This document shows, piece by piece, positions 1 through 56,329 of a DNA stretch of 64,000 bases. Position 1 is the stretch's first letter; each line of letters begins with the position of its first letter. Location of the stretch: positions 620,001 to 684,000 of the forward strand of contig JAMWBK010000011.1 of NCBI GenBank assembly GCA_029953675.1. The letters are read 5' to 3'. The translations under genes and the position numbers were made by a program. The DNA is from Rhodosorus marinus CCMP1338 (Eukaryota; Plantae; Rhodophyta). Below the pieces are notes generated by a model. That model saw only the letters and a program-made list of their open reading frames with translations, was not told the DNA's origin and ran no database searches.

Positions 1-317
1 GACGAGACCCGTCATCCAAACACTGTCTGCGCAGGAAAAAACATGGCAAACATCCATACCTTGTTCACTGTCTCCTGTGTAATCTCAATGGGCACGCCGT
101 GCAGCTCGTTCACTGCAACGATAACAGAATTCGAGTCGTTAACAGGCGCATCCCTCACTCCAACCGTACCATCCTCCCGAATCTCCTGAGCAGCGGCATT
201 CACCCGACTATCAATATACTGCCGAAGACTGCCCCGGAACATCCACAACAAACAAAAGAGCAACGTCTGACCAAGCACAACCGCAACCATCAACAGAATA
301 GCCGCAATCAGCTCCAT
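1..317 (-). CDS. TM + RING-H2 (ATL-like) E3 ligase paralog 1, 3'-truncated by window edge
   Basis: ATG at 317 (MELIAAILLMVAVVLGQTLLFCLLWMFR, hydrophobic helix). Exon 1 317-60 ends ITQETVNK followed by donor GTATGG at 59, matching the junction motif of the other paralogs. A possible acceptor at 23 gives CLDDGSR (cf. CLAE/CLRN). The RING itself lies outside the window. Confidence 0.75.
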
Positions 318-1809
318 CGCGACCTTTAAAAAAAGAGGTTTCTTCCTCTGCTCAAAACCCAGCGCAGTCCATACCAACCCAACTTGCCCACACCCTCCCT
401 CTCCCAGACCCCAAATCCGAAAACGGTATTTCACTTCCTAAGAACTCATCTATCCTCCTGACTACTCTTCTTGCTCTACCTCTTAAGAGAGCCTCCGTCC
501 AGAAGGGCTACTCTACCAGAACAAAAGTAAAATATCCCAAACCTCTTCTCTTCTTCTTCATCAGCTGCGCTGACGAAAGAGATGAAACTAACTACCCAAG
601 CAAAAGGAAATATCAAAGCCCTAGTCGATGCCCGTGAACAACGTGGGGAGACTTGCGTACTCTCTCTCTCCTTTTTTGACTATCGTCTTCAGTATCAGCC
701 CCGCGTTTTCTTCGTATCACGCCTCGCGTTCTTAACCCTGAGGTTCGTCTCTATTCAGTTTTCTCCGCACGATGCGCTGTGGGTTAACTATCGGCAGCGC
801 CGTGTGCGGAAGGGACAAAAAAAAGTTCGTCGTCAACCATCTGCTTTAGCCCCCCAAAGCCCAAGTCCAGTCCTCTCCTCTCTCTTTCCCAAGGCGGAGG
901 AACTGTCGTCGCGCACCAAACACCATCCACATTACGGCATGGCCTGAGATATGAAGGGGGGTACACCGGCTCAAATATGACCTGTACGAAATTGTAAAAC
1001 AGACTAGGAAGTTGCTGCTCCAACCAACAATACCAGCAACGAACTCTCGCGGTAAAGCCAAGAAACCTTAAACACCGTTCCCAACCGAATTCCATACTAG
1101 GAACGACCGCCCCTCACCGCGTAGTTTTTAGTACACTTAGTACATGAAATACGAAGAGTAAGGAAGGAAGGAGTACTATGGGGCATGCCTCATGCCCCTG
1201 AGATCGTCAGACAACAAACGATAATATTATAATAAAACTTCAATGTTTCTCCTCTAAAGGGGCACATTTCGGGGCTTTTCTCCATTTAGGGCATTCTCAA
1301 TCTTGAAATTTATTTTGTATACTCATGAAAAGATGCCCCCGCACGATGTTCGTTTTTACGACGACTAAAATACGTCATGTTCGTTCGTATTGGATTGGCG
1401 CCCTCCATGGAAAAATAAAATATGGAACTGAAATCCATTGGAAGGGCGGGGACCTAGAAGCGGCCTTGCGAACTCAACATCCCCCCCAATCGCGCGTCCA
1501 TTTGTCAGCAACAACACCTGAAATTTGTGCCGTGCACTCTGTCTCTGTCTCTCTCTCTCACGGGAACAAAGGAGCGCTCCCAATGACTAGAAGGTCTCCA
1601 ATCGCAGAGATCGTGGAGATGAGCCCCACTGAGTCGATATCAAAATACAGTCTAAATCAGACTCAGGGATTCGACCTGGTATCTTAGGTTTCCATCCAAA
1701 GAAACGGCCTTCTCTTGTTCTATCCCTTCTTCCTTTTCTCTTTTTCTATCTGCTTCCCATTGAACTCTCCAAGCCCTAATGGTTCGCTACTATATTGCGG
1801 GCGTCTTCA

Positions 1810-1975
1810 GTAGTTGAGTTCTTTGGCTTGATGCATTCGCTTAATTCCCGTTTGGCGTCGCAAATTGTTCCGCGAGCGCACAGACCGGCTCTCCTCTCGT
1901 TGCCTACCCTTTTGGGTTCCCTGTTGTGGCGCTGCTTTGATGCTGGAGGCGCGTGATCTTCTCATTCTGAGCTCC
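1810..1975 (-). repeat. Degenerate dispersed repeat, copy 1 of 3
   Basis: 24-bp exact match CGCTGCTTTGATGCTGGAGGCGCG at 1930-1953 and 5487-5510, with patchy flanking similarity; boundaries approximate. Confidence 0.55.
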
Positions 1976-2518
1976 TTTTTTTTTCCCCCATTGCGCTTTT
2001 CTTCAGCCTCCGAAGAAACACGTTTCATGCAATAAGCTTCTGATCTCCTTTCGGGGGAACCGTTTCACGGACTTTTTTCGCACGTCACCACTTTTGAGCA
2101 GCCTCTGCACCTCCGATGAGGTTTGCGCGTCGGCAACAGGAATTCGGGGGTATCAGAATCTTACCGAGCCTCTGTTGGAATCCCGGATACGGCTTCAATG
2201 GGGAACGGGGCTGGACCCATGTTGGTTTTTGTGCCGTAGGCCTGGTTTGGAATTCAACGGATTTTATTAATTATACAGCGGGACCCAGCAGAAGCGGCTT
2301 TGTTCTGCGCTATCGTCGGAAATATTAGTCGCAATCTCAATCTGCAGAGAGCGCCGTTATCATCGGAAATATTAGTTGCGGTCGTTCGCCTGCAGCGCTG
2401 TCTCTCGATAAGAATATATGTGCACGTCGTTGGGATGATCGCTTTTTGCGTTCGGTCGATTCTCCAATAGCCAGCTCCTCGCTTTTTTCGGAGTTCAATG
2501 GCATTGTCGAGGCGAAAG

Positions 2519-3178
2519 TTAAACCATGTTCTCTCCCCACGTCGGCACCGTTTCAGATTTTTCCATCTCCAAGCCGCACACTGGGGCATTGATCTCCACG
2601 TTGATGGGGAAGACCGGGGTCTTACAGTTTGGGCAAGTTATATCACGACGAGTATAAACCCATTTTCCCAAACAGGTCAAGTGGAAACCATGCCCGCAGG
2701 TTGGGGCAATGTAGCACTGCGAATTTGGGGCATCGAGTAATTCATCTAAGCAGATGCTGCACACGACGTCATGATGCTTAGGCTTGTCCACGATGTCGCT
2801 CATTTCAGCCAGACACTGTTGGTAAGTGAGAATAAACACAGAAAGGTGAGCATCAGATATTCTATCCCCGTCCTCGTTTCGTTTCGTGTTTTGGGCTCAA
2901 AAACCTACCTCGTTCACGAAATCCTGGTCCACGGCCCCGCGTTTCCCGAAAACGTCATCCCGTCGTTCTCCATCAATACTCACGATGAACTGATTCGCAA
3001 TGCCAGGCACCCGCTGCTCAATCTCACGACTCTCCAAATCATGCGACTCCATTTGCTGCCCAGCCAGCTCTACTCGCCAGCGTTGCCTCCTCGTTATCAC
3101 ATACCATACCAAAATAATCGACGCAGCAATAGTCAAAAACACCAGCACTCCTACCACAAAATCTGATATAGACGCCAT
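2519..3178 (-). CDS. TM + RING-H2 (ATL-like) E3 ligase paralog 2, ~188 aa
   Basis: Exon 1 3178-2909 (TM FVVGVLVFLTIAASIILVWYVI then RRQR); intron 2908-2816 (GTAGG...AACAG, 93 nt, phase 0); exon 2 2815-2519 with CSIC-x17-CGHGFHLTC-LGKW-x8-CPNC. Confidence 0.9.
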
Positions 3179-4169
3179 CGTCCAAAACGGAAAAAAGCAA
3201 AATTTTCTCCCTTACGCCCTTTTCCAAACAAAAGAAATCGCCGCAAGTCGTCCACAAACCCTAGCACGAGCTGCAGCAGTCTCTACTCTATTCCCAAGTC
3301 GGAGTACAAGCAGACACAGCAACCTCCTAAAAGTCCTCACCGTAGTTTCTCACTCTACCTGGTCACGGTCGAACAAAAACAAAAACGACCGACAGTGGAT
3401 TGCAGGCAAGTCGTCAGTGGTACTACGCGGCTCGCTCTCTCCCACTCTGACGCCGACCAGAGAAAAGTCGTGAACAAATACCCCTGTCGCTCGCGGAAGA
3501 CAATTCCCAGAGACAGATCATATCTACCGACCTGCTGTGGTTCACTAGACTTTGATTTGTCAATGATGAACAGCCAAAAAAAGGCTCCGGACTTCTGAAT
3601 TTCGCTACGCGAGTGCAGAGAGACGACTTAGGAAGGCACTTCAGTTTCCCCACCCCCAAGCGGGGCGAGAGTAAGCTAGACAACTTCCAAATAACTTAAT
3701 TTTCTGCTCCAGCTCGGCAAACGTCTTCCCCAAAAACCCGCTATGGCAAACGGCAGCTATTTCGGGAGGTTGTCATAAACCAGTCCGATTTAAATTAGAC
3801 TATTCCAAAACATTCGAAAAATTGGGGTATATCAGACTGAAATTATCCAAAAAACCTGGGAGATTGTTTGTCCGATAAACCGTCCAATATTCAATCAAGG
3901 TTGGTAATATAATCAATCGCCTAAGTGGTACATGAAAAAAACTGCCCTGGGCTACATAGTAGGACGGGAAAGCGTCCTTGCCAATTCACTCCGACGAAAG
4001 TGGGCAATTCCATATCTAACCGGCCTGAAGTGTGCACAAGCTGTGGTCACTCTTTTATGTATGCTGAATGAGGAGTGGAGTTGGTTGTTGAGTTCTCCAG
4101 ACTGTTTCGTATAGGATCTGGTTGTTTTTTCTTTCTTTTCCAGAAGAGTCAAAACCAGGAAAAGGGGGA

Positions 4170-4360
4170 TTGAATGAATGGGTTTTTGGTGGGGGAGACC
4201 CTGCTGCAATGGCGAAGATCACTCGCCTCGGATATCAAAGCAGCGTCCATACGCCGTAACCACAGCAGGAAACTCAAACGGCTTAACGAGGAGAGCCAGT
4301 CGGCGGGCGCCCCGTGGAACAAGCTTGACCGACAACCGAACAACTTCCAAGCAGAATGAT
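4170..4360 (+). repeat. Degenerate dispersed repeat, copy 2 of 3 (inverted relative to copies 1 and 3)
   Basis: ATCAAAGCAGCGTCCATACGCC (4234-4255) matches the reverse complement of 5477-5498 at 21/22; shared TTGAATGAAT...GGAGACC upstream; boundaries approximate. Confidence 0.55.
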
Positions 4361-5339
4361 TCGCTTGTGCGCTTAACCACCGGGAATATGATTAATGAAA
4401 TAAATTGCGGACCCACATTGTTAGTCAAATGTTCCCCCTAAAACAGAATTCAATCGATATTCGTTGTTGATTGACGAATATCAATCGGTCGGTATCGGAC
4501 GAACTTGTTTGTTTTCTTTTTATTTAGGTCCTATATTTATCGGACGCTATCGGATTTATCGGACATCAATGACCAGCCGGATTACAGTGAAGCTTTTAAA
4601 AGCAGCAGCGTTTGGAGAAAAGACCGATGTTCATCAATAAACTCAATACTCCGTCGGGGAGATGATTCCGTATGTAAACCCCGGCACAGCTTCCAATCCA
4701 CCGAAGGAAGGCACCCACTGCCCGACCCTCGGTCCCGACACAGTTCGCTCGCGATGGGAAAGATTCAGTTGTCCAAGTTTTCCCATGGGTAGATTAATTT
4801 GAAGGTTGACCAACAACCGAACAACTTCCAAAGCCCAATGAGTCCCTCTTTCCGCGCTCGCCCCCCCACCCTTCGAGCATCCGCTCTCCCTAGTTCCAAG
4901 CCATCCGCCCATTTATTTTTTTGTTCTACACTTTTATCATTTGCTCAATGATCTCTGTTTGCAAATATACATTTTTATAATTAAGGTTGTCAGGAAAAAT
5001 GGGACGAACGCCGGAGAGGTACGCTGGAGAAGCAAAGTTAAAAGTCAATTCATCATCGTTTTAATCGGGAGGTAGTGCAAGGCCCCGAATGAGGTACTCT
5101 AGTAAGGGCATAGAGATCGCGCCCGCAGCGGCACTTCTAAGTTTAGTTAGAGACCACAACTGGCTATGCTAAACCAAGGGATCGCATCTCCAATACTAGG
5201 GCCGCATTAGAACGCCACATCATGTTTCATGATGAGTTGACAAACCTGTGACTCCCTTTTCCCCGCCTTGTAGGACACCCAAAGAGTTGAAATATGGCGG
5301 GCGGGTTTGCCCTCCACAGGCATTCGTACTTCGGCTCTA

Positions 5340-5575
5340 GCTCATCGATTGGTATCTCTGGTTATTGAGTGCTTTGGGTTTATGGATTCTGTTGGTTCCC
5401 GCTGGGTCGGGAGTTGTTCCGCGAACGCCCTGACCGCTCTATCCGCGTTGTTTACCCGTTTTAAGTTGCCTGCTATGGCGTATGAACGCTGCTTTGATGC
5501 TGGAGGCGCGGTCTTAGTCTTTTTTTAACCCGGCGGGGTTTGTCTTTCGGTCTCCGATTAAGCAAAATTCATTCA
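5340..5575 (-). repeat. Degenerate dispersed repeat, copy 3 of 3
   Basis: See copies 1 and 2; this copy lies inside a 14-bp inverted repeat pair (5204-5217 / 5579-5592). Confidence 0.55.
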
Positions 5576-6476
5576 AACTGGCGTTCTAATGCTATGGAGA
5601 AGTCAAACACCTGTGGCTGCTTCCTTTTCCCTCTCACAGGGCACCCACAATACGGTCATTAGTTTTCCAGCAGACCATAGCATGAACCTCAACGAGGGGA
5701 GGAAACGTGAGTGTGTCTCATCACGATCGCGTAAACAGTCCCAAAGCCAAGTCGCCCGTAAGCTCTCTATGAAGCTGAAGACCTCAAACCAACCAGTGTT
5801 AGCAGTGGCAGACTGCTTGAAGACGTGGCGCCACTATCTCTAGGGTTTGAAGACGGTGGTCTTCACAGAATAGGCCGCCGTAGCGTACTTCACGGACCCC
5901 CAAGATCCCAATGGTCGCCAGCTCTTTTCAACTAATGTTGTGTTTTACATAAATTTGACAAAGACAAGCTGTCCTCGAGGCATCTGGTGTTTTTCGTATG
6001 GAATTCTAGGCAATGAGAGCGAATGGGAACTGGGTCCGGTCGTTCGGAAGGGAAGCGGTTTGCTGATGCCCTAGCGATGAACTGAAGTGGATAATCATAC
6101 ACGGAAGAGTATACTAGACTAGCTAACGCATTGCGGACGAGCTTCGAAGCCTTTAATTGCGTTCTTTTCCGCAGCAACAGGTTGCATGGAGCGATGAGCA
6201 TGGGCTTTGTACACGGATCGATTGCTCGAGTTTTAATAAGAGCTACCTAGTACAATACTACGATAGGTACTCCAAATGTTTAAGGTGACCAGAGCGGAAG
6301 GATATATGAGCATGCGCAGGGCCCGCGCGTTGGAGACCGGAAAAGCGCCGGCGGATTGTCTTTCTGGACAAACGCCTGTTGGCGTATGCACTTTTCCGAG
6401 CGGTTTTCACAGTCGCGGCTAAGCCCTTTCTCCAGACTGGGTGTTTGCTGACACCGGGTACTGATGCATCTCCCTG

Positions 6477-7193
6477 CTATGCAACGGACAACTTGCTCAG
6501 GTTTTTCTCGGCAAAGTATCTCTCCATCCCATCGGTTAAGAAATCCACGAGCTTTGCGTACGCTGCTGGTGTGTCTTTCAGGGCGCCGCTCTCGATCTTT
6601 CCCTTCAGAAGATTGAAGGTTAGGAAGTTGACGGCCGTGTACCCCATACAAATAGTATACCCCTTGCCGGCGTCGTGGAAGTCGAAATAGTTTTCAACTC
6701 TGAAGGAGCTGCCCATTGGAACGTCCCGGTTGTGAATCTCCCACTCAAGGCGAAATCCTGTACTCGTGAAAGCCAGAAACGACTTCTCATCTACTCTCGT
6801 CTGCTTCGGACCGATTGTATAATTTAATTTCTTCTTAAATGACCCGGTTCGCTCACGATGTCCTCCTACATTGTCCCAGTTAGTGATCTTCACATCCCAG
6901 TCACCCATAACAGACTTGTGGAACTCCGTGTATATGTTCACCCCATCTTCGTAAATGTACCTGAACAGATCACGAATGTTGACCTCCAAGCGCCTCTTGA
7001 ACACCTGCTTCCGCTGTGTAAACGCCTTTCCGTGGTAGAAATCGAGTACATCCCCCTTCTCTACCCACACAGAGTCCTCACTCACCTCCCCGCGGCTCTG
7101 CTCCGGATCCTTCCCCAAAACACCCGCTTCAAGTTCCTGCTCGCTCCTCAGATCCTGACCAATCCCGGCCTCCTGAGACGCGGTTGACGCCAT
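6477..7193 (-). CDS. VASt (VAD1/StARkin lipid-transfer) domain protein, ~238 aa
   Basis: Single ORF from ATG 7193. Motifs IGPKQTRVDE, DVPMGSSFRVE and KGKIESGA are typical of VASt/Lam/GRAMD1 sterol-binding domains. Acidic low-complexity N-terminus; no GRAM or TM segment seen. Confidence 0.8.
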   Translation of the reverse strand: MASTASQEAGIGQDLRSEQELEAGVLGKDPEQSRGEVSEDSVWVEKGDVLDFYHGKAFTQRKQVFKRRLEVNIRDLFRYIYEDGVNIYTEFHKSVMGDWDVKITNWDNVGGHRERTGSFKKKLNYTIGPKQTRVDEKSFLAFTSTGFRLEWEIHNRDVPMGSSFRVENYFDFHDAGKGYTICMGYTAVNFLTFNLLKGKIESGALKDTPAAYAKLVDFLTDGMERYFAEKNLSKLSVA

Positions 7194-8896
7194 TTCCTCC
7201 ACACAAAGGTGAGAAACCGCTCAATCCGATTACACTCGGCCTTAACGAAGGGCTTGTGAGAGTACTCAGCAAGCTCCCGCACCCACCCCGTCACTTTTTA
7301 AAGCCGTCCCGAAAGCCGTTAACAGTTGGAGTCACTTTTGGGTCAAATGCCGACCCAAAAAGTGCAAACGTTGGTCGCAAGGGAGCACCAGGTTGGAGAG
7401 GTTCCATAGCTCATTTGCCTGTCTTCCATACCGGAAAGGCAAAAAAACGGAGAGAAAGGATCTAGACATGAGGAGGCTCCTCTTCGTGGCTGCTTTTGGA
7501 GCACATCACGCATCCGGCAAATGCCGTCCCATCCGATGCTGCCTTTTGGGACGACGCCGTCCGGCACCTTGATGGTCCAAGGCAAACGTTCAGGGGTCCT
7601 CCAGGATAGAGGCCGGTTAGAACTTGAATGAAGGGATCGATGGTTGCTGGTTGATCTGTTTCGAGAAGTCTTAATTTCTCCTGATGTTCAGCTCAATATT
7701 TCTCTATAATGCAGCTCTCATAGTTGGTTTGGCTAGGTGCAGAGCCAAGAGTGTTCGTAGCTTCAGTATCATTGAGGAGCTATGGCTTTCATCTGGACTA
7801 CTGGTCCGCCGATGGAGTCTGGGCTGACTGACAGTGCTCTGTTTGGTCCTCGGAGTAGGAGCAGTATTCAGGATGGTATCCTCATCCAGATGATTTCCGG
7901 AGTGCTTTGTTCCTGGCTTTGCAGGTTTCGAGTTTGGGTGCGTGTTGGTCGGCAACGTAGATTAGTAATCCGACTGATGAGGAGCACATATGGATTGTTT
8001 CATGATGAAGAGGGATTATGGCTATCATCGATGCACTTCCTGGATCTTGGAATGCTAGATGAGCTGGTGTTGCTGAGTCACAGAGGACAGTTCAGTGATC
8101 CTCAAATTCCTTTTTGGCCGGGAGAGCGGTCATGAGCTTGTTCGTAGTGTGGATCTGTTGTTCTGTGTACTCGTCAAATTTTTTTTCGGGGCTTTTATAT
8201 AGTTTGTCAGATCTTTGTCACATCCAAAAAGCTATTGACTCCTCTTTGGGGCTCTCATCGACCGGGCCCTTCGGCGATACCACAGCGGTTGGCTTTCGGG
8301 GCGCCCGGGGGCGTAAGTCAGTAGTGGGCGATGCTGCGTTTTGACCCCCAATGTTTTCGGAGGGTTTTTGCACAACTTGTTTCTTTATTTAGACCTTTTG
8401 CTTCATTTCGTTAGCTCTCGCTACGCCTGGAGGAAGTTTGTCTTCGGGATGTCGATTCGTTTGGAGCCGGGATAAGCATTTCCGATTTTCATTTGATTTT
8501 CAGAATATTTTAGTGGTCTAAGCATTGAATAATTGGCACTGAACAAGCGTGACGTATAAATAACACCCACGGGTTCTGCATCTGGCTAGAGAAAAGGTAG
8601 ACAGACGTAAGCAAGAGCAAAAATGTGAAGAATCTGATATGCAAGGAATGCCGGTTATACTGAAAACCCTCGAAAGCTGCTCACTAGCCCCAATCTCCAA
8701 AGAAATCACTCAACCAGCCACCTTCCTCCCCTTCTTCGATCCCTCAATCAATCAAATCTGGGGGTGAACCTTTCCTTTACACCTTTCAATAATCAATGAC
8801 CTTGCTTGTAGCACCCGAATTGTTTGTACAGAGAGTAAAAAGAGGAGCCGAACAAGATTTACAAGCGTGAGCACTCCTACGAGCATTGAGAGCCGT

Positions 8897-9489
8897 TCAT
8901 ACTATTAAATAAGTCCGCGAATTGGAGGGCTGGTGGTAGAAGAGATGACCCCCATCCGCTGATGCAAAAGGGACTGTACAAAGAGGGCATTCTGTCCTCT
9001 TCCCGCTGCATATCCACTTGCTTATGCAGTCCACGTGAAAAACATGCGAGCAGCTCGGTGCAACGAACACCTCCGTCTTCATGTCCGGAAATTCTTCAAG
9101 GCATATCGTACAAACGTCCGGGTCCTCGTCCCCGTGGTCCGAGATAGCCGACTCAACCTTCCCGCTAGTCTCAACCAACCACTAAGCAAAGCAAAGCGAG
9201 AACATTCACACTGCCTAGTAAGCATATCTGCCAATCAAAAAAACACCGTAACAGTCACATTCAAGCAAGTTCACTCCCTTACCTGCCGTACGTCGTTCTC
9301 CGACATCGCGCACCTATCCAACGCCCCGCAGAACTGAATGATAACCGTATTATCCTCACCTCCCTGCTGCCTAGCCAACGCCTCCTCCATCATAAGCTCC
9401 CTCCGCAGGAACCTCCTGTACGCAATAAACGAAAGGAAGGCCAACGTACAAAGAACGACTACCAGAGCCACTCCATAAATCCAGAGCAT
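8897..9489 (-). CDS. TM + RING-H2 (ATL-like) paralog 3, ~163 aa
   Basis: Exon 1 9489-9283 (MLWIYGVALVVVLCTLAFLSFIAYRR); intron 9282-9182 (GTAAG...CTTAG, 101 nt); exon 2 9181-8897 with CTIC-x16-CSHVFHVDC-ISKW-x8-CPLC. Confidence 0.9.
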
Positions 9490-9604
9490 CTCTCCCACCC
9501 AACTCCAGCGCCAAGAAAACACAAAACAAAACCAGTCGAACAGTAAAAAAAAAGAAGAGGCCAAATACCAACAAAACCAAAAAAAAATTCTTAACTCTTA
9601 CTCT

Positions 9605-9862
9605 GCACTCTGTCTCTCTCTCTCTCTCCCTCCCTATCCCCCCTTTGTCTCTCTCTCTCCCCGTCTCTCTCTATCTCTCCCTATCCCCCTTTTGTCTCTG
9701 TCTGTCTGTCTATCTGTCTGTCTATCTGTCTCTCTGTCTGTCTCTCTGTCTATCTGTCTCTCTGTCTGTCTCTCTGTCTGTCTCTGTCTGTCCCCCTCTG
9801 TCTGTCCCCCTCTGTCTGTCTCCCTATCCCCCTTAATCTCTGTCTCTGTCTCTGTCTCTCTT

Positions 9863-9927
<65 letters not shown>

Positions 9928-9968
9928 CACTCTCTCCCTCTCTCAGTCACTCTCCCTCAGTCTCTCTC
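9605..9968. repeat. Compound (CT)n/(CTGT)n microsatellite
   Basis: About 360 bp of CT, CTGT and CTAT units with interspersed CCCTATCCCC motifs, directly upstream of paralog 3. Confidence 0.95.
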
Positions 9969-11465: not shown

Positions 11466-11972
11466 TCATGTCCCCGAAAGAGGACTCTCAGGATCATTCT
11501 CTGCAATGAATTGCGCTTTGCAGATGGGGCACGTTGTCTCGGCCTTTGTATGGACCCACTTCCCTATGCATGGGATATGAAACGGATGGTGGCATATAGG
11601 CGCAGCGAATATCTTCGCATTGTTTCCTTCGAAGCTCTCCAAACAGATGGCACACACCTCGCCCTTGTCCGGAGGACCCACCTCACAATCAGGAATCTTT
11701 TCTAGAAGCTGTTCCAACAGAAAAACCAAGAGCAACACAAGGTCCGGGTCAATTCATGAAAGGTGAAAAATTGCACCTTTGTCCTTCGGTCATACCATGA
11801 TGGTTTGTTCTTCCGTCGCCACCTGGTCAATCGTCGGTACATTGTTTGCCTCGGTCTCCTCTGTGCCACGCATGAAACCCCGCTTGAAGATGCAGATGTA
11901 TAAAACGTAGGCCGCAAACGCGAATACAGGCAAGGTAATCAGAAACAACCCGCCAAGCGCCCATCGATTCAT
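11466..11972 (-). CDS. TM + RING-H2 (ATL-like) paralog 4, ~139 aa
   Basis: Exon 1 11972-11796; intron 11795-11709 (GTATG...AACAG, 87 nt); exon 2 11708-11466 with CAIC-x16-CHHPFHIPC-IGKW-x8-CPIC. Confidence 0.88.
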
Positions 11973-13484: not shown

Positions 13485-14145
13485 TCACGCCACTGCTACA
13501 ACTTCTGTGACGTGGTCTGCCGGGCTGTGTTCCCCTGCGATGAACTTCTCAAAAGTGGGATTTTCCTCATCCGGAACAAAGTTAGTCCTGCAAATGGGGC
13601 ATGCAAGGTCTCGTCGCCGGTAGACCCATTTCCCAATGCAGTTCAAATGGTACGGATGATGGCATGTTGACGATACAAACTGGTTTCCATCTTCCTCATC
13701 AAATTCGCTCAAGCATATGCTGCATATCTCTCCAGGCTCCACCGCAGCTTCATGGTCTCCAATCTCTTCCAACTGCTGCAAGTGAGGGAATACAAAAGCA
13801 CAACAGTCAAGCTTCAGAACTGGTCCACAAAGGAAGGGACGAGCGGGCCGGGGGACCGAGGGTGTGTATCCGCAATTATGCCCCAGATTTTGATCAAATA
13901 GCGTGACTTACATCCTTTACATCGTGCAGCGTTGTTGCAACGGCATCCTTGGTCTTCATGTCCAATACAACTACAGCGCCCCTCAATCGCTGTCTTCGAG
14001 ACACGCTGCGTTCATCCTCAACTACTGAATCCTCTCCATACACAGAATTCTTGTGCCCTGAAATAATAACCAACGCTGTAGCAGACAGCCCAATAGCCAG
14101 AAGCACGCCCGCAACGATCGCTACGGCAACCACACTTTCCACCAT
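13485..14145 (-). CDS. TM + RING-H2 (ATL-like) paralog 5, ~174 aa
   Basis: Exon 1 14145-13912 (MVESVVAVAIVAGVLLAIGLSATALVII); intron 13911-13776 (GTAAGT...TGCAG, with a CAGCAG tandem acceptor); exon 2 13775-13485 with CSIC-x16-CHHPYHLNC-IGKW-x8-CPIC. Confidence 0.88.
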
Positions 14146-16248: not shown

Positions 16249-16892
16249 CTATGAAGTTACTGCAGGACCCCGCTGCGAAAGCCAGTGCAAGGGGTTCCCT
16301 TCGTCATCATCCGATATCATCGGAATTTTGCAGATGGGACAGAGCACCTCCCCGCGTGTGAAAAGCCATCTCCCAACGCAGCCAACATGGAAGGCGTGCG
16401 TACAATTCTGGGAGATGAAGCATTTTCCGTCCTTGGCATTCATTTCTTCTAGGCAAATGGTGCAAACATCTGAAACATCATGCTTCTCCACGTCGTAGGG
16501 AGCACTGCATTGCGCGAGATACTAAAGGGTGGGAACGAGCAACGAAAACCGAGCAAACAGAACAATGAGCATGGGTCTCAAAAACCAGGCATGTCAAGTA
16601 CCCCAAAAATATGAAGCATTCAAAGCCCTACCTCATTCAGTCCATCCTGGCTGAACTTTATTAGCTCCCCGTTTGTTCTGATGGAGGCTTCTCCATTCTC
16701 CAAATCCCGCTCATACTCAACGCCAGCGTCCACCGCAAGAGCAGACCTATCCCGGGGCCTCTCCACCGCAGCTTGTTCCCTCCGTCTACGACATTTCTTC
16801 TCATAAATTTTCATCCCAACAATCCCCACGAGCCATAGCGCTGCGCACGTCGCCACCAAAAGAATCCACCGCCCAAACGACCCCAGTACCAT
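16249..16892 (-). CDS. TM + RING-H2 (ATL-like) paralog 6, ~177 aa
   Basis: Exon 1 16892-16632; intron 16631-16522 (GTAGG...TTTAG, 110 nt); exon 2 16521-16249 begins YLAQ and has CTIC-x16-CTHAFHVGC-VGRW-x8-CPIC. Confidence 0.88.
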
Positions 16893-18542: not shown

Positions 18543-19155
18543 CTAAACAGCTGTGTCATTCGAGTTAGCGGGTTGGGACTTCGGAATGCTGGTGAACGGA
18601 AGCGAAGTGCCATTGCTCTCGAAGGGCAGTTGACAGTATGGACATTGGAGACTGCTCCGAGTGAACATCCACTTTCCTACGCATTGTAAGTGGTAGTTGT
18701 GCTTGCATGTCGGGGATAGGAATACATCAGAGGTTTCTGAGGAGAGTTCATCGAGACATATTCCGCAGTCGCCAATTTCTTCGTCCACTGCGGGCTCTGG
18801 TCTACTGATACTCTGCATGAACTGTGGGATTAAAAAATAGGGTTGTCTGATGTGAGGTGTCTGGCCTTCTTCGGCAAGTTCGTTTGTTTGTCCGGTGTCA
18901 CCCTCTTGTTCTTACCGTGTTGACATCTTCCTGCGTCGGGCCAGTGTATCTGGAGCTAGAAGGATGCCCTGAAAACGCTTCTGGATTTACACCCGCACCG
19001 TTTCGATGATTACGAATTGCGTTGAAGCGAGCTCGGTTTCGAGCGGCTCTTCTGCCTTCAGTCTTCGCCGATAGATAGTAGACCAGCAGCCCAATTCCCC
19101 CACCCACCAAGCCCGCAGCTATTCCAAGCAGCAGGAAAAACGCCATTTCACCCAT
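18543..19155 (-). CDS. TM + RING-H2 (ATL-like) paralog 7, ~172 aa
   Basis: Exon 1 19155-18916; intron 18915-18822 (GTAAG...CACAG, 94 nt); exon 2 18821-18543 with CGIC-x16-CKHNYHLQC-VGKW-x8-CPYC. Confidence 0.9.
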
Positions 19156-21718
19156 CTCTCAACAACCACAGGAGCAAACAAACCCCTCCACTCCAAGCCC
19201 TCCTTCCCAGCACTCCCCCCAAAATTCCGTCTGCACCACAAACGCAACCGCCGGATCAACTCCTTTCACAACCTTCCTGCGCAAAGCGAAACAAGACCGC
19301 CAATCTAACTCCCTCACAAAAGGACGACACCTAAAACACTGCGCCCTCTTCGGCGTCACGACGTCCTCAAAACCACAAGAGCTCAGCAGTCGTCTCCCTC
19401 CGCTTCCCAGCAAGAGAGAACAAAAAGAAAACACAAACCCAAAATCCCCACGTCTCCTAACACTCGCATCTTCCAAGCCTGCAGCGGTTACTTCCGCTCC
19501 AGCTCCGTTGCACTCACCCTTCGAACACCTCTTTCCTCGCTGCTGTCACCAATCCTATAAACTCATTCGTCGACTTCCTCCCTCACGAAAACAGGAACAA
19601 CGGGCGTCAGCCGTTCCCCCGTGCCGCTCTTCCCTCTCCAAAAGGGACCCTTTCTACGAACTCCCACTGGCACGTGGAGCGGAGCGGGTGGGGTGGGGTG
19701 GGGAGGGGAGATTGGGGTTGCTTCTCCTCTCTCTACTCAGTCACTCAACCTTCCTTTTCAAAAATCAAAAGACTTAAATACAACTCAGCTCCTTTAGCCA
19801 CCATTTGCCTCTGCCGAAAGCTTAGCCTCACTGAATAGCAGATGACACCCCCAATATAGAGAGATATCTGAAATGATAAAAATCCTCCTGAAATTAAAGT
19901 ATGTCACATTTAGTCCGATAAAAGTACTTAGTACACAGATTAGTACATCAATAATTGAATAAAAGAATAAAATTCCTCACCCTCAAATGAAAATCTTTGG
20001 AAAAAAGGGTCTGGATAAGCAACTCGAAATCAGACATGTTTTGTTAAATAATTGTGTCGCGGTCACTTCGCATTGGCTGGTGGGTCCGGGGTGTTGCCCC
20101 CTCGTAAAGAATAGCGTGGACTTCAACAGTTTTGATGGTACCGTTAACTCCTGAGGGGGCCTGAGTCGTTCAGAGTCTGATGCCCCCAAAAGCGTGCCCA
20201 CCTACATGCTCCTAAATCCTGTTGCTCTTTAGCTAACCTCTTTGAGAAGTGGTCCCCCTCTGAAGAAGAAGCACCTCTGCGGCTATTATCATACGTGTAC
20301 AAGTACGTATTCCTGTATGGTTAACAAAAATAAGACGTGCTACCAGCTCTGGTGAGCTGGCTGTTTGGAGGCTTCGACAAATGGATGCACTTGCCATGGG
20401 GTTTTGAGACTGTAAGACGTCTCGTCTCGGTTGCGTTGAAAATCCGCAACCGAAAGCTGATGAAGCTTCAGGTGGCATCGTCATCCAGCGCTTGCCTATG
20501 ACTGTTCAGTAGTTGAAACGCTGCCCTCCTTCTGGAGGACGAGGTCTTTTCGTCTTCGTTAGTTTCTCGGCTGGTATACCCTCGGCTGCTAGTCTCCGAG
20601 TAAAGTCAGTGGGATTGACTTACGCTTCTAGGTCCATCTTCTTAATGACTTTCAGTTCAATAATTCATCCTTTCATGTGGGGCATTGAACGTTTTGTTCA
20701 TTATATGAGTGAGCTTTGATGTACTGTATTTTAGTTGCTAAAACATAAGGCTTGGTGAAATCCTTTTCATGAATATACAAAATATATTTAAGCAAAGGGC
20801 ATGCCTCAATGCGATGATGCCCCGCACATTGCCCCGATATCGAGGGAGACCATTGGAGTTATCATTACCATCACATGTGACCTTCATGCGGCATGCCTCA
20901 TGCCCCCACTTTACTCGTTCCATCTGATGTGTTGTCTTTGTTTATTCTTCATTATTATACGTTTTATTCAGCAGACGCGTCTGATACTGTTTAGCGGACA
21001 GTTTACGACAACCGCATTAAAGACAAGAACAACGAAGGACAGGCTGTCGTTTTGGGCTGTGGGTAGGTAGGTTGGTCTGGTCTGTTAGAGGCGACTTTGC
21101 ATAGAACAGCTTTGGTCACGCTCTTTACTTCGAAAACAAAGACACAGCTCTGCCCGAGCAGGTTTATGTTTTGTATTTCTGGCCCACGAGGACGAGACAA
21201 GTGCGGGAGTTCTCGAGCCTCCGGGGGCAGAACAGTGGATGCTGGAGAGGCGATTTTTACGATCGATCGTATCGTCTAAGTAGCACGCACTTCATCGAGA
21301 TTATATACTACTAGAGATTCGAGCCACAGGGACGCAAGGCCACAGGCCGGAGATGGGTGGACAAAATCGCCCGACGAGAGCTGTTACAGTATACATCCAA
21401 TGCAGATACTCGTGAGAGGATTTCGGCGACAGGCGTGGCAATCGACACTTGTCTCTGGATGTAATAATCCAACAAAGATCCATCTAAAAACGTCGGCAAC
21501 GCCCGTCACCGAATCCTCCCAGGCGCAACTGACCATTTGTCACCACCGGACTGTCCTCTTCCTCGTGGATTTTGTCCGCATGGTTGAGGATGCTAAAGTC
21601 CGCAAGGTCATGGTGGATCTAGAAACAGACGATGTGACTAGATGATGACAATAATTTACAAAGAATACATGTGCGAGTCTGTGTCGCGTATTCCAGAAGC
21701 TCCTGGGCCTCACAGAGT

Positions 21719-22459
21719 TTACGTCGGTACCGTGTTCACTTCCGCCGTCCGAGAATGTGTGCTATCGTTCGTGCCTGCGTCGATGGTCTCCGTCTGGGTC
21801 TCACTCGAGTTCCTGGCCAGCGTACTCAGGGCGGGTATATCCTCTTCGGTCTCCGGTTGGGCCCTCGCGCTCGTGTTTAGTGGCGCGTCCTGCTCGTCTT
21901 TGGTAAAAATTACAAATGGGGTTTTGCAAATGGGGCACTGCGCGTCGCCTCGCGTGTAGACCCACTTCGAGAGGCAATGCACGTGATACGCATGTTTGCA
22001 AGGCGGGGCAATAAAAATAGTTTCCGCCGAGTCCTTCGCTATGACAAAATCCTCAAGGCATATACTGCACACGTCATCTTGAATCTCCTTCAAATCGAAG
22101 TCCTTGTCGCCCAAGTCAACCAGTCCCTGTGCAGAAATTGCAGAGAACAGGGAAAACCAATCCGTCAGCCGAGTTTGACTCAGCATTCACGAACAAACAT
22201 CAAACCAGAGACAAAGCCAAAATCTTACCTTCTCAACAACTTCCTGTGTAACTTCGACCGCTCCAGGCCCAGACCCATCCACCTGAACACTGCCCAATTC
22301 CACCAAGAACGCATCCCGCGTCCCATCCGTGAAAAATTCAAATTCGTCTCGCTGGCGGCGGTGCCTCACCCACCTCCAGTACAGATAATGAGCAGTCAAG
22401 CACAGGAACACCAGCGCAAACGCCACCGGCGCGAACAAATAAAACCTAATGCTATTCAT
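21719..22459 (-). CDS. TM + RING-H2 (ATL-like) paralog 8, ~212 aa
   Basis: Exon 1 22459-22229; intron 22228-22127 (GTAAG...CTGAC...CACAG, 102 nt); exon 2 22126-21719 with CSIC-x19-CKHAYHVHC-LSKW-x8-CPIC and an S/T/E-rich tail. Confidence 0.92.
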
Positions 22460-22631
22460 CTTGACTCAATCCAACCCAAGTCAACCCCAACTCTTACCCC
22501 AACCGCACAAGCTCTTACCGCCGCCCAAAAATCCGCAACGCGACCTCCCTCTCCATCCTCACCAAGGAAAAGGTAACACCAACAAGAAGAGACTGGAGAG
22601 CTCAAGCCCAGCCTCTGAACCTGATCCCCGG

Positions 22632-22892
22632 ACTCTCTCTCTGCCTCTCCCACTCTCCGTCTCGCTCTGTCTTTCTCCCTCTCTCTGTCTCTCTGTCTCA
22701 CTGTCTCTATATCTCTCTCTGCCTCTCCCACTCTCTGTCTCGCTCTGTCTTTCTCTCTGTCTCTGTCTCTGTCTCTCTGTCTCTCTGTCTCTCTGTCTCT
22801 CTATCTCTCTCTGCCTCTCCCGCTCTCTGTCTCGCTCTGTCTTTCTCTCTCTCTCATTCTCTGTCTCTCCCTCTCTCTCTCTCTCTCGCTCT
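22632..22892. repeat. Compound (CT)n/(CTGT)n microsatellite with higher-order units
   Basis: CT-rich tract containing three copies of a CTGCCTCTCCC...GTCTCGCTCTGTCTTTCTC unit at about 22641, 22719 and 22811. Confidence 0.9.
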
Positions 22893-22896
22893 TTGT

Positions 22897-23480
22897 CTTC
22901 AGACCCAAAGAGAGCGAACAAAGCTAACAAAGCAATTCTCTTTTGACTACAAATACCTGTTCCCTCGAACTGTTTGTGATGGTGAAGCTTGTGCATTGTT
23001 AAATGGAAGAGCTGCTTTCGTAAAGGTCCCGATTGTCTTCAATCGAGAAGTGTATGTAGCACTCTGGCTTATGTCTAGCAGAGCTAGCCACAAAACGAAA
23101 CTGACGTTCCCCCCTCTCCAGCTCTTCAAACCCAAAAGTGAGCTAACAAGCATTTCTCTTTTAGACTACGAGATGATGTTCCTCCAAACTGCTTGTGATG
23201 AGGAAGCTTGTGTATTGTTGAATGGAGGAGCTGCTTTCGTAGTGATCCCGATTGTCTTCAATTGAGAAGTATATGTAGCGCTCTGGCTTATTGCTGGAAG
23301 CGCTCTTCAAGTGACGTCCCTCCTTCTCTCTTTCTTCAGACCCAGAGAGACCATTAACGAAGCAATTCTCTTGAATACGAAAGGAGGCTCTGCTCCTCCG
23401 AACTGTTGAGAAGGAAAAGCTTGTGTCTGCTGAAAGGAAGAGATGCTTTCTTGAAGCTTCCGATTGTCTTCAATCGAGAA
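22897..23480. repeat. Tandem array of three diverged ~210-230 bp units
   Basis: Units start at about 22897, 23124 and 23334. Shared blocks: CTTCA(G/A)ACCCA, GCA(A/T)TTCTCTT, AAGCTTGTG, TGCTTTC, CCGATTGTCTTCAAT(C/T)GAGAA. A fourth decayed copy lies at ~24620-24737. Confidence 0.85.
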
Positions 23481-23703
23481 CTAGACGCGCCTTATTCGTG
23501 GAAAGGAAGGCCGTCTTTCGCCATGGGGGAAACGCAGCTTTAAGAACGATTATCACAGAGCTCTGTCCAAGTAGGTTTCTGGAGCAGACTTAATCCCCGA
23601 AGGTCAGCAAACGGACAATGTGACTAGATGATGCCAATAATTTATAACAATATATGTGCGAGTCGTGTCGCGTATTCCAGGAAGCTCCAGGGTCTCACAG
23701 AGT

Positions 23704-24452
23704 TTACGTCGGTCCTATGTTCACTTCCACGGTCCCAGAATGTGTGGTATCGTTCATGACGGCGTCGATGGTTTCCGTGTGTGTCTCACTCGAGTTCCTG
23801 GCCAGCGTACTCACGGTGGGTATATCCTCTTCGGTCTCCGGTTGGGTCCTCGCAATCGTGTGGAGTGGTGTGTCCGGTTCGTCTTTGGTAAAACTTACAA
23901 ATGGGGTTTTGCAAATGGGGCACTGCGCGTCGCCTCGCGTGTAGACCCACTTCGAGAGGCAATGCACGTGATACGCGTGTTTGCAAGGTGGGGCAATAAA
24001 AATTGTTTCCGATGAATCCTTCGCTATGACAAAATCCTCAAGGCATATACTGCACACGTCATCTTTAATCTCCTTCAAATCGAACTCTTTGTCGCTCATG
24101 TCAACCAGCCCCTGTGTAGAAAATTGCCAGAGAACATGCAAAGAATTTTTGCATTCGTCAGGCTAGTTTAACTCAGCATACAGGAACAAACATCAAACCA
24201 GAGACAAAGCCAAAATCTTACCTTCTCAACAACTTCCTGTGTAACTTCGACCGCTCCAGACCCAGACCCATCCGCTTGAATACCACCCAACTCCATCAGG
24301 AACGCATCCCGCATCCTACCCGGGGAAAATTCAAATTCCTCTCGTCGGTTGCGGTGCCTCAGCCACTTCCAGTACAGATAACGAGCACCGAAGCACAGAA
24401 ACCCTAGCGCGAACGCCATCGGCACGAATACATAAAACCTCACATAAGCCAT
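23704..24452 (-). CDS. TM + RING-H2 (ATL-like) paralog 9, ~212 aa (recent duplicate of paralog 8)
   Basis: Exon 1 24452-24222; intron 24221-24112 (110 nt); exon 2 24111-23704. Exon lengths are identical to paralog 8 and the RING is near-identical. Confidence 0.92.
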
Positions 24453-26013
24453 ATTGACACATTCGAACACCAGTCAACCCCAAATCCACGCGCTCCTACC
24501 GCCTCTGGAAAACCACACAACTTCCCTCTCCATCCTCACAAACGCCGACCAGAAGAAGAAACTGGAAAGCCAAAGCCCAGCCTCCTGAACCGAGCAAACT
24601 CTCTCTCTCTCTCTCTCTGTCTTCAGAAACAAAGAGCCAGCAACTGAATCGGCTTCCGCCTTCGCTGTAGTGGGAAAGTGTCCGGTTTGATTGAAAGGGG
24701 AAGAACCGACTTTCCTGAAGCCTCCGATCGCCTTCAACGTGTGACCCTCGGGCTAAGTACTATCAGCAAAGTTTTAGCTGACCCGCGTGGTCAGACTCGC
24801 CGCTGGAGCAGAGCTCCCAACGGCAGAGACAGTTCACGTTCCTGACTCTTTCGACAAAAGAAACAATGTATAAATCCGGAAGGGTTCTGTCTTCGTTTCA
24901 ATCTCCCAGGCGCTCCCCGATCAGCTTCTTGCAAAGCATTTCTGTGGGAAACTGTCTATCTGACCACCCTGGGTAGCAACGCTAATGCTCTTGGGTTTCC
25001 TAGGACGAACGTAGCCATACCGTGGATGCTCCTTTCTCATCTCAGAAAGCGAGGAAAACCGGTGGCGCGTTCTCTATCACAAGATTTGCTATCGGAATCA
25101 ACGATTTAGCACAGCCAGAGAATTGGACAGAGGATTCCTATAAGGTTTACTGGAATCCTATCCGGAATCGGCTATTTAGTTTTGGGACACCGGATGAAGA
25201 CTATGTAGACGACTCTGGAGCGGATGGCTGGCACCCAAGCTGTCATCAATGTGACCTCCAGTCAGTGTCTGGAACGGACAGTTGGATTATTGTGATAATT
25301 ATTCGATCTTTTTCCGGTCTAGAGTTGAGGGCCTCGTGGTCAGGATTTGGAGAGCACCTAAGCGATGCTCTCCATCTGAAAAGCGACTGTAGTTTTAGCT
25401 GCAGATGTTGAGCGTTGATGTTGGATGAACGCGGCTTGGGGATGAATCGGAAACAGGCCTGCCTTCCACCCATTGCTGAGAGGGCTTTTCATCCGAAAGT
25501 TTCCAAGCTTTTCGGGCTTGAAGCGTTATAGTCCATAGTTTGCTGGTCATGAGTATCTCATGTCTGTTTTTGAGAGCTTATGTGCTGACCAGCCTCACAA
25601 TCTCAACTGAGTTTTCGAAATAACACATCGTAAAGGGAAAAGACAGCCTGTTCTTACAATGTCAGGCATTTTAATAATAAGCATACAATCGGGCCCTTGA
25701 TATACAATAATTCTGCGTTCTCAAATCATGAAAATCGCCGGAATGCACAAGCCTCGAAGCCTTTGGACGAGCTACGACAACGAAGAGCGTCCTTCGACTC
25801 AGCCTTCCGCCTTGTGTATGAAAAGAGAGAACGATTGGCCACCATCGTTCGAAAAGAGGGGAAGAAGTTCTCCAACAAAGCGCACTATCCAACGTGTACT
25901 TTGCCCTTGAACGTCAAGCTTCAGAATCCACTGCCCTGTACCTGATCTGCAGTCAGTGTAGTTCGCTTGGGCCATTCTGTACGTCTCGAAGGATTCCTTC
26001 GGTTTCTCCTCTG

Positions 26014-26700
26014 TTACACGCTCACGTTCGTTGCGGGGTTTGTTTCTACCGAGGCCAGGCTGGGTTCTGCTACGGTCCCCTTGGGATCTTCGTGGATCAA
26101 CGACCGTCTCCTGGCTAACTTCTGGAACGCGCTTCCTTGCTCCTGTTCTGAAATAAACTCTTGTTTGCAGATTGGGCAGTCTATTACTCCCCGCGTGAAA
26201 ACCCACTTTGATATGCATTTGAGATGGTACGCATGTTGGCACTTGGGCGCAATAAAGATGTCTCTAGTTTCAACATTCTCCGAAAATTCATCCAAGCATA
26301 TGCTGCACAGCTCCTCCCCATCGCACCATTCGTCCGGTTTGCTCCAGCTCAAGTTTCTCAGACACTGGACGAAGCGCGGTGCACAACAAGATAAGGTTAG
26401 AAAGGTCAACAAGTTATATTCACATTTCAGCAAGAGCTACCAGCATGCATGACTTACATCATCCACAAGCTCCGGAGTCACCTCAATTGTCTTTGATGGT
26501 CCAGCGGAGGTATTTCCCTCCTCCAAATCGTCAATGCTCAAGACATAAACATCATCCTCAATTCTCTCCGGCATGCTGACCTCCCACTCCCTTTGCCGTC
26601 TCCTGAATCCATTGAAGTAAATGTGCCTAACCATCCCCACCAAAAACACGGCAATCGCCACACCAAACACGGCGACAAACAACTGAAGATACGCGTTCAT
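26014..26700 (-). CDS. TM + RING-H2 (ATL-like) paralog 10, ~197 aa
   Basis: Exon 1 26700-26458; intron 26457-26365 (GTAAGT...CTAAC...TCCAG, 93 nt); exon 2 26364-26014 with CSIC-x18-CQHAYHLKC-ISKW-x8-CPIC. Confidence 0.92.
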
Positions 26701-30920: not shown

Positions 30921-31349
30921 ATGGCTGTTCCGTTGAAGAAGAAAGGGCAACCTAGGGAGAGGCTCATCGTGGTTGCTCTTGCATGCGTCTTGTTGTTGAT
31001 GTTTATCAAGTACCAGCTGAACTCCTCCCGAGCACGCTTCATTGTGAGTGACTTGCAGTTGTTGAAGATGGAGTCTGTAGGACATGAAGAGTCGATCAGT
31101 AAGCTTCGGGTTCAGTGGTGGAATGCCCATAAAGAACTGGAAAAGCTGCAAAAGGAGGAGAGGACTGGGAGGAAGGCAAGTAGAAAACCGCCAAACCTTG
31201 TCGTTCCAAAACCCCAAGAAAATCAGAAAGCGGCCCAAGCACAAGCAAAAGCTGAAGCCGATGCTGCAGCTCAACCGGAGGGAGCCGCAGACAAGCCCGC
31301 GGAGGTGGCCAATGACCTGGGAGCCGGTGATGCGCTTCCGAACGCATAA
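30921..31349 (+). CDS. Type-II membrane coiled-coil protein (stalk family member 2), 142 aa
   Basis: MAVPLKKK basic tail, TM LIVVALACVLLLMFI, coiled coil containing VGHEESISKLRVQ, A/E/P-rich tail; clear paralog of 31899-32348. Confidence 0.8.
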   Translation: MAVPLKKKGQPRERLIVVALACVLLLMFIKYQLNSSRARFIVSDLQLLKMESVGHEESISKLRVQWWNAHKELEKLQKEERTGRKASRKPPNLVVPKPQENQKAAQAQAKAEADAAAQPEGAADKPAEVANDLGAGDALPNA

Positions 31350-49227: not shown

Positions 49228-49340
49228 GCCAACACCTAAATTTTCTTGCCAGAAAACAAAATGCTGTCTGTGCATATACCCAAACATTACGGCCAACATC
49301 TAAATTTTCTTTCCAGAAAACTAAGTGCTGTCGTGCAAGA
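49228..49340. repeat. 64-bp-period imperfect tandem duplication
   Basis: GCCAACA(C/T)CTAAATTTTCTT(G/T)CCAGAAAAC(A/T)AA(A/G)TGCTGTC at 49228 and 49292. Confidence 0.8.
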
Positions 49341-56229: not shown

Positions 56230-56329
56230 GGCTGTTCCCTGCCGCTGTCGATGTGGCACCTATCCACGAACGTTACTAGAGCATAAACCCAATATCCGTA
56301 CTTGATCCATGGAGTCATTCACATCCCAC

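Follow-up and report, generated by a model that had tools for sequence, protein, structure and literature searches.

We analyzed a 64-kb stretch of DNA from Rhodosorus marinus CCMP1338 (positions 620001–684000 of contig JAMWBK010000011.1, assembly GCA_029953675.1; hereafter the window), which contains an array of genes encoding small proteins with an N-terminal transmembrane (TM) segment and a RING-H2 domain. R. marinus is unicellular and belongs to the Stylonematophyceae, a class of red algae; its 31.2-Mb genome was published for other purposes, in a paper that does not mention ubiquitin (PMC10250338). Six-frame scanning of the window with the regular expression C-x2-C...C-x-H-x2-H-x2-C...C-x2-C detected nine RING-H2 motifs in total. 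They are confined to the minus strand between positions 2624 and 26307, and the rest of the window, including the remaining 37 kb, contains none. On the 5' side of each RING-containing open reading frame (ORF) there is an ORF which starts with a hydrophobic segment, and the two are joined by a GT...AG intron of 87–136 nucleotides in phase 0. The nine spliced models (139–212 amino acids) are identical, residue for residue, to GenBank proteins KAJ8901322 and KAJ8901324–31 (NDN08_007170 and NDN08_007172–007179). Together with a tenth gene, whose first exon lies at the left edge of the window, the family comprises ten minus-strand genes, all with intact ORFs and all with eight zinc ligands (those of the tenth gene were read on the contig). 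An initial annotation, made from the letters of the window, had described ten minus-strand genes of one layout (TM segment, basic residues, one phase-0 intron, RING), and this description agrees with the GenBank proteins; its statement that all nine visible RINGs keep their eight ligands was confirmed by the regular-expression scan and by Pfam.

The genes are numbered here g0–g9 by increasing window position. Only part of g0 (NDN08_007169, P0018, 180 amino acids) falls in the window (1..317): exon 1 (317..60) provides 86 codons covering the TM segment, the basic cluster, and the linker up to ...ITQETVNK, the first 59 nucleotides of its 106-nucleotide intron occupy 59..1, and the RING exon lies just off the left window edge, as confirmed on the contig. 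The next gene, g1 (NDN08_007170, 188 amino acids; 2519..3178), consists of exon 1 at 3178..2909, a 93-nucleotide intron at 2908..2816, and exon 2 at 2815..2519, with the RING at 2761..2624. g2 (NDN08_007172, 163 amino acids; 8897..9489) has exon 1 at 9489..9283, an intron of 101 nucleotides at 9282..9182, exon 2 at 9181..8897, and the RING at 9112..8978. The shortest protein (139 amino acids) is encoded by g3 (NDN08_007173; 11466..11972), with exon 1 at 11972..11796, an 87-nucleotide intron at 11795..11709, exon 2 at 11708..11466, and the RING at 11654..11520, and the longest intron (136 nucleotides, 13911..13776) belongs to g4 (NDN08_007174, 174 amino acids; 13485..14145), where it separates exon 1 (14145..13912) from exon 2 (13775..13485, RING 13724..13590). 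For g5 (NDN08_007175, 177 amino acids; 16249..16892), exon 1 is at 16892..16632, the intron (110 nucleotides) at 16631..16522, exon 2 at 16521..16249, and the RING at 16464..16330; for g6 (NDN08_007176, 172 amino acids; 18543..19155), the corresponding positions are 19155..18916, 18915..18822 (94 nucleotides), 18821..18543, and 18767..18633. Two genes encode proteins of 212 amino acids: g7 (NDN08_007177; 21719..22459; exon 1 22459..22229, intron 22228..22127 of 102 nucleotides, exon 2 22126..21719, RING 22069..21926) and g8 (NDN08_007178; 23704..24452; exon 1 24452..24222, intron 24221..24112 of 110 nucleotides, exon 2 24111..23704, RING 24054..23911). The last member, g9 (NDN08_007179, 197 amino acids; 26014..26700), comprises exon 1 at 26700..26458, a 93-nucleotide intron at 26457..26365, and exon 2 at 26364..26014, with the RING at 26307..26167.

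The array ends at g0, because the genes past it on the contig are unrelated (metallophosphatase, methyltransferase, and flavodoxin-like). The genes had been presented as a head-to-tail array of ten; all ten indeed share one strand, but a minus-strand gene outside the RING family, which encodes a protein with a VASt (lipid-transfer-like) domain (NDN08_007171, 6477..7193), lies between g1 and g2 and splits the array into two and eight genes. Using all ten proteins as tblastn queries against the window, we found no pseudogene relics outside the ten genes at E < 0.1. Shared promoter or untranslated-region motifs were likewise not found in the 500-nucleotide upstream regions, which have in common only GA-rich or T-rich 7- and 8-mers that are no commoner than in shuffled sequences.

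Each protein contains a single hydrophobic segment of 19–28 uncharged residues, located within residues 1–31 and starting in the first 10 residues, whose best 19-residue window has a mean hydropathy of 1.8–2.75. Zero or one positive charge precedes this segment, and two to seven are found in the next 15 residues. Identity between paralogs averages 50% (38–72%) in the RING and 19–22% in the TM segment, linker, and tail, the latter being the same as in shuffled controls (~18%). The initial annotation had called these non-RING parts barely alignable, which fits the shuffled-level identity but not the whole of the linker, in which a conserved motif of about 18 residues, h-x-h-[TS]-[QE]-[ED]-x-[VIL]-x-x/x-[LM]-x-x-[ILM]-[SG], spans the exon junction (marked here by the slash) in all ten genes. 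This junction motif is located 17–23 residues before Cys1, and its identity between paralogs is 25% versus 14% after shuffling.

Judging from profile scores and predicted structures, the RING assignment is well supported. The nine window proteins match zf-RING_2 (PF13639) with 36–41 bits against a gathering cut-off of 27.3, and the Pfam scan of these proteins gave no match other than RING families and no PA domain. Membership of the RING-CH/MARCH (RINGv) group was ruled out by the ligand pattern, which is C3H2C3 and not C4HC3, and by RINGv scores of 16–21 bits, below the 21.6 cut-off. In the ten genes, Cys2 and Cys3 are separated by x16-19 and Cys6 and Cys7 by x12; among all relatives the ranges are x15-19 and x12. 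Among the residues known to contact the E2, an Ile two residues after Cys1, a Trp after Cys6 (C-x3-W), and a Pro after Cys7 are kept in all ten paralogs, and in orthologs from other strains and wider alignments the Trp is invariant and the Ile and Pro are nearly so, two strain orthologs having Val in place of Ile. When the family profile was compared with PDB, the matches were active RING-H2 ligases, the best being RNF13 (E 2.4e-14), whose alignment extends into the helix preceding the RING, followed by EL5, Hrd1, RMR1, RNF24 (7.8e-11), RLIM, and Arkadia. Foldseek comparison of the predicted RING retrieved the RINGs of RNF38, RNF12, and RNF165 that were solved with E2~Ub (probability 1.0, template modeling score to target 0.64–0.83). 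For g9 and g6, which are distant paralogs, AlphaFold gave concordant models: an N-terminal helix (residues 3–41 in g9 and 2–49 in g6; predicted local distance difference test [pLDDT] 80–95) is followed by 20–30 disordered residues, a short helix that coincides exactly with the junction motif (pLDDT 71–80), the RING (pLDDT 73–90), and a disordered tail.

Tandemly arranged membrane RING-H2 ligases are best known from land plants, where they are called ATLs (Arabidopsis Toxicos en Levadura) and many of them respond to stress and pathogens. Like plant ATLs (e.g., rice EL5 and Arabidopsis ATL2, ATL9, and ATL31), the Rhodosorus proteins consist of an N-terminal TM segment, a basic stretch, a short motif, and a RING-H2 with no other domain; they share with ATLs the Trp three after the sixth ligand and, in eight of the ten (all except g4 and g5), a Pro one before Cys3 (P-x-C3), and tandem arrays are frequent among ATLs as well (PMC3161093; PMC6118397). 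On the other hand, ATLs are defined by a 42-residue RING-H2 of exactly C-x2-C-x15-C-x-H-x2-H-x2-C-x10-C-x2-C (PMC3161093), and the Rhodosorus spacing of x16-19 and x12 departs from x15 and x10. No G-L-D is present at a consistent column, and a TQExV-type motif takes the place of the ATL GLD motif, which comprises 12–16 residues between TM helix and RING and usually begins with G-L-D. Roughly 90% of ATLs lack introns, and the ATL family is described as plant-specific (PMC6118397); by contrast, all the Rhodosorus genes are interrupted by a single phase-0 intron at a conserved site, and their host is a red alga. ATL arrays are common in plants but mostly contain two or three genes, with a maximum of nine, in Sorghum, among the 24 plant genomes tabulated (PMC3161093), versus ten genes here. 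Strict ATL membership was rejected on the grounds of ligand spacing, the missing GLD motif, and the conserved intron. The ATL-type architecture suggested in the initial annotation is real and a fair analogy, but the proteins fall outside the ATL definition. It might still be argued that they are true ATL orthologs, inherited from the common ancestor of Archaeplastida, given the shared architecture, Pro, and Trp, the rank of EL5 as second-best PDB match, and an hhalign comparison with a plant ATL-type set (99.1% probability) which places the junction motif over the GLD motif. However, the posterior confidence of that pre-RING alignment is low and the best PDB match is an animal protein, RNF13, and these points, along with the differences in spacing, motif, and intron, make such orthology improbable.

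Other families were compared in the same way. A single TM helix followed by a RING-H2, here predicted to be on the cytosolic side, is also the layout of RNF24/RNF122 and of PA-TM-RING proteins (RNF13/RNF167/GRAIL and plant RMR). The latter have a signal peptide and a PA domain ahead of the TM helix; PA-TM-RING membership was rejected, as the TM segment of the Rhodosorus proteins starts in the first 10 residues and no PA domain was found in the Pfam scan. RNF24 and RNF122 are small N-terminal-TM proteins of like architecture, and the RNF24 match given above covers its RING only. The closest folds to the predicted RING, with E2-contact residues in common, are those of the soluble proteins RNF38, RNF12/RLIM, RNF165/ARK2C, and Arkadia, which differ from the Rhodosorus proteins in having no membrane anchor, a much larger size, and other flanking elements.

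With regard to membrane insertion, the N-terminal helix would act as an uncleaved reverse signal-anchor of type III (N-out, C-in), the basic cluster after the helix holding the C-terminal side in the cytosol according to the positive-inside rule. An alternative is that in the same enzymes the helix, taken as moderately hydrophobic, is a signal-anchor for the mitochondrial or plastid outer membrane instead of the endoplasmic reticulum (ER), secretory pathway, or plasma membrane. An N-terminal helix followed by basic residues is also the targeting signature of signal-anchored outer-membrane proteins, and the helix in this family is at the extreme N-terminus with two to seven basic residues behind it. 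Moreover, the reported locations of RING ligases with N-terminal helices include chloroplasts, mitochondria, and peroxisomes in addition to the ER and Golgi (PMC6118397). However, segments of the observed length and hydropathy fit ER-type anchors at least equally well, the sequence discriminates neither way, and different paralogs may go to different membranes. Overall, an outer-membrane location for the family appears rather unlikely.

Transcript evidence was obtained from MMETSP0011 and MMETSP0315, which are further R. marinus projects. Transcriptome-derived proteins are present for all ten genes, and for nine of them the protein reads straight over the predicted junction; transcript contig L002 maps to g5 with a break exactly at 16632/16521, and contig L004 maps to g9 with a break exactly at 26458/26364. 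Thus, as judged from transcripts of other strains, all ten genes are transcribed and nine are spliced as predicted. The g8-type gene of the MMETSP0011 strain is represented solely by an unspliced contig (L010), in which the intron has a GC donor instead of GT. An unspliced g4 contig and an apparent intron-retaining form of g9 were also present.

To describe the selection acting on these genes, we used the ratio of nonsynonymous to synonymous substitution rates (dN/dS), calculated pairwise by the Nei-Gojobori method. In six ortholog pairs pooled between strains (synonymous divergence, dS, 0.29), the RING has a dN/dS of 0.17, the N-terminus plus TM segment of 0.47, the linker of 0.31, and the tail of 0.48, each of these values being significantly lower than 1; the non-RING parts pooled over orthologs give 0.39 (p ~1e-14 vs. 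neutrality). Between g7 and g8 (dS 0.21), the values are 0.05 for the RING, 0.66–0.68 for the N-terminus plus TM segment, 0.75–0.76 for the linker, and 0.57 for the tail, and the combined non-RING value of 0.67 is indistinguishable from neutral (p = 0.17). RING dN/dS ranges from 0.05 to 0.30 across all comparisons, in line with the purifying selection on the RING that had been proposed from the sequence. Within each orthogroup, the non-RING parts are moderately constrained and the RING is strongly constrained. In addition, synonymous sites in the RING core are saturated in all paralog pairs except g7/g8 (median proportion of differences 0.87), which indicates that the divergence of the non-RING parts among paralogs reflects the age of the duplications.

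These data also bear on a different view of the array, that of an arms-race repertoire with ongoing diversifying selection on TM segment, linker, and tail and rapid gene birth and death. Several observations would suit such a view, such as the random-level identity of the non-RING parts among paralogs, the non-RING dN/dS of g7/g8, which is far above that of the RING, and a dN/dS of 2.06 for the N-terminus plus TM segment of g4 versus its ortholog, although the latter is not significant (p = 0.28). Furthermore, one other strain has an extra g9-like paralog, and plant ATL arrays are described as evolving by birth and death (PMC3161093). However, the pooled ortholog values are significantly below 1 for TM segment, linker, and tail, no region in any pair compared is significantly above 1, and the diversifying selection proposed for the TM segment and linker in the initial annotation was not borne out. 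The ten orthogroups are common to other strains, pseudogenes are absent from the window, and the synonymous saturation of paralogs implies that the divergence is old rather than fast. We consider an arms race quite unlikely. Birth and death as such is weakly supported: the extra g9-like gene speaks for it, and the lack of relics, the sharing of all ten genes, and a conversion-like pattern in g7/g8 (see below) speak against it. Since one strain has this extra gene, gene turnover exists, but it is slow. The extra gene, found on L008 (P0060/P0199) of the MMETSP0011 strain, has ~80% nucleotide identity to the g9 ortholog of that strain and encodes a 37-residue N-terminal extension before the TM helix; the gene has no counterpart in the window.

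The g7/g8 pair, whose proteins are 78% identical, is the sole pair still alike at the DNA level: positions 21623-22649 and 23609-24615 form a duplicate with 83% identity over ~1 kb, including the intron and flanks. Comparison with the g7-type protein P0202 and the g8-type contig L010 revealed two different groupings. Residues 1–35 group by paralog type (g7-P0202 77% and g8-L010 83%, with cross-comparisons at 60–66%), whereas exon 2 groups by strain (g7-g8 84% and P0202-L010 91%), and the TM region and the 3' part have significantly different site patterns (chi-square test, p = 5.6e-5). The simplest reading of these sequences is an old duplication, not a recent birth, in which exon 2 appears to have been homogenized by within-strain gene conversion while the anchors stayed distinct. 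Other self-similarity in the DNA is confined to CT/GA microsatellites; long, imperfect tracts of (CT)n, which read as (GA)n on the strand of the genes, are present at 9608-9968 and 22634-22898, just upstream of g2 and g7 only, and make up most of the non-genic self-similarity of the array. On contig L004 of the MMETSP0011 strain, positions 1764-2339, which are 3' of the g9 ortholog, contain a g8-like upstream region and first exon without the ATG and with a stop codon, which run straight into a sequence that matches the 3' flank of g7. This remnant could be a read-through, an assembly chimera, or a degenerate extra copy; its interpretation as a sign that the g7/g8 lineage was lost in another strain was dropped after g7-type and g8-type transcripts had been found.

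The distribution of the family was analyzed by searching a profile against 1.84 billion representative proteins and by two word-index searches. Full-length family-level matches were detected only in R. marinus, where all ten genes have counterparts in other strains, and on two short contigs of sample SRR23287143, which come from a GC-richer organism (GC 58–64%). Reading these Logan contigs (L006 and L007) by hand revealed the same junction motif, phase-0 intron position, and RING; L006 reaches far enough upstream to include the TM helix and the basic cluster as well, while L007 is 5'-truncated. In L006 a Cys replaces the fifth-ligand His, giving a C3HC4-like pattern. Given this range of full-length matches, the family is lineage-restricted, as the initial annotation had proposed, yet extends beyond one strain. 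Below the family matches, scores fall to generic RING-H2 proteins, many of them of plant ATL type, and x15/x10 is the commonest spacing class among these non-family matches. Four high-scoring multi-RING proteins (P0058, P0061, P0062, and P0066) were rejected as relatives, as they are fused models of unrelated tandem RING genes. A pattern search of metagenome contigs with g7 alone gave no match; the strictness of the patterns explains this result, because g7/g8 relatives later surfaced by protein search. No publication describing such a red-algal family was found.

Taken together, we propose, with a probability of roughly 0.7, that the ten anciently duplicated same-strand genes (two plus eight) encode a Rhodosorus-restricted family of small single-pass membrane proteins, which are most likely RING-H2 E3 ligases. 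Behind the membrane anchor, a disordered linker of ~30 residues is predicted to lead to the short junction helix, at the same place as the ATL GLD motif, and the cytosolic RING-H2 would recruit a ubiquitin-charged E2. The paralog-specific TM segment, linker, and tail might set the membrane location or the substrate. The ten paralogs are older than the divergence of the sampled R. marinus strains, and each is kept by purifying selection.

Several points weigh against this proposal. We infer the E3 activity, the E2 partner, the membrane, the topology, and the substrates alike, and the topology is based on hydropathy, charge distribution, and AlphaFold helices. Eight of the ten proteins have Lys or Arg as the basic linchpin after Cys8, but this basic residue is absent from g2 (Thr) and g6 (Gln). 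The non-RING dN/dS of g3 is 0.89, which is near neutral, and considering this rate and the residues in g2 and g6, some members may be drifting. The dN/dS estimates come from short segments compared in pairs, in which site-specific positive selection is undetectable. The conversion reading of g7/g8 presumes a common strain of origin, or at least closely related strains, for P0202 and L010, and both are transcriptome assemblies that could be chimeric.

Taken further, some of these points could mean that none of the genes has a function of its own, the copies being redundant, decaying, or non-catalytic (pseudo-ligases), as might be suspected from the near-neutral non-RING parts of g3 and g7/g8, the missing basic residue in g2 and g6, and the occurrence of the g8-type gene in one strain only as an unspliced contig with a GC donor. 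However, all ten ORFs are intact, with eight ligands each and transcripts for all, RING dN/dS is low throughout, and the Thr of g2 and the Gln of g6 are conserved in their own orthologs. This reading is, in our opinion, extremely improbable.

A second tandem array was observed on the minus strand at 41370-59277. It contains at least six paralogous single-exon ORFs of ~290–430 amino acids with ~23–26% mutual identity, located at 41370-42542, 43432-44685, 46250-47134 (with an overlapping upstream ORF at 47016-47477), 52872-54002, 54973-56259, and 58120-59277. The N-terminus looks F-box-like: one of these ORFs matches the F-box profile PF00646 with 22 bits (cut-off 20.5) and others match more weakly; in addition, there are faint hints of WD40/beta-propeller sequence. 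On this basis, the array represents a putative family of E3 substrate receptors beside the RING array. One might go further and regard this F-box-like array, with its six genes, and the neighboring RING-H2 array as a "ubiquitin-ligase diversity island", in which the paralog-specific recognition parts would form an immune-like repertoire to sense or disarm viruses, parasites, or bacteria and, at least in the g7/g8 pair, conversion would keep the catalytic exon uniform and the targeting exon distinct, but we regard this idea as very doubtful.

Several other features were noted in the window. The translations of a family of plus-strand ORFs (30897-31349, 31899-32348, 33541-34173, and 37698-38270), judged by eye, combine a hydrophobic N-terminal segment with charged, coiled-coil-like sequence behind it; two of the ORFs were scanned and gave no Pfam match, and the last abuts an ORF matching Glyco_transf_25 (38267-38941). 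Two adjacent plus-strand ORFs at 40067-41072, the first with a DHHC motif (...VMDHHCTFLANCIG...), suggest a palmitoyltransferase gene with an intron. An intergenic repeat at 49607-49804 consists of 3.9 copies of a 50-nucleotide unit (84% matches). A plus-strand ORF of 462 amino acids (50810-52198) ends in several C2H2 zinc-finger-like repeats and contains a 45-nucleotide tandem duplication (51695-51784). On the minus strand, a 396-residue ORF (62335-63525) has an N-terminal hydrophobic segment and a sub-threshold match to the metallo-beta-lactamase fold; since the exact ORF is absent from the protein collection, the annotated model probably differs.

The RING-H2 array adds a new family, restricted to one lineage, to a known kind of enzyme, and we see no sign of a new mechanism. 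With ten genes in the 31-Mb genome of a single-celled red alga, it exceeds any ATL array tabulated for the 24 plant genomes, which places it at the upper end of arrays of the same kind. The diagnostic differences from ATLs (spacing, intron, and pre-RING motif) suggest either that the combination of TM anchor, short helix, and RING-H2 has evolved repeatedly or that the divergence is very deep. The g7/g8 pair offers an example in which conversion appears to homogenize a catalytic exon while the membrane anchors stay distinct. For red-algal biology, the locus provides a compact set of candidate E3 ligases whose paralog-specific parts are conserved.

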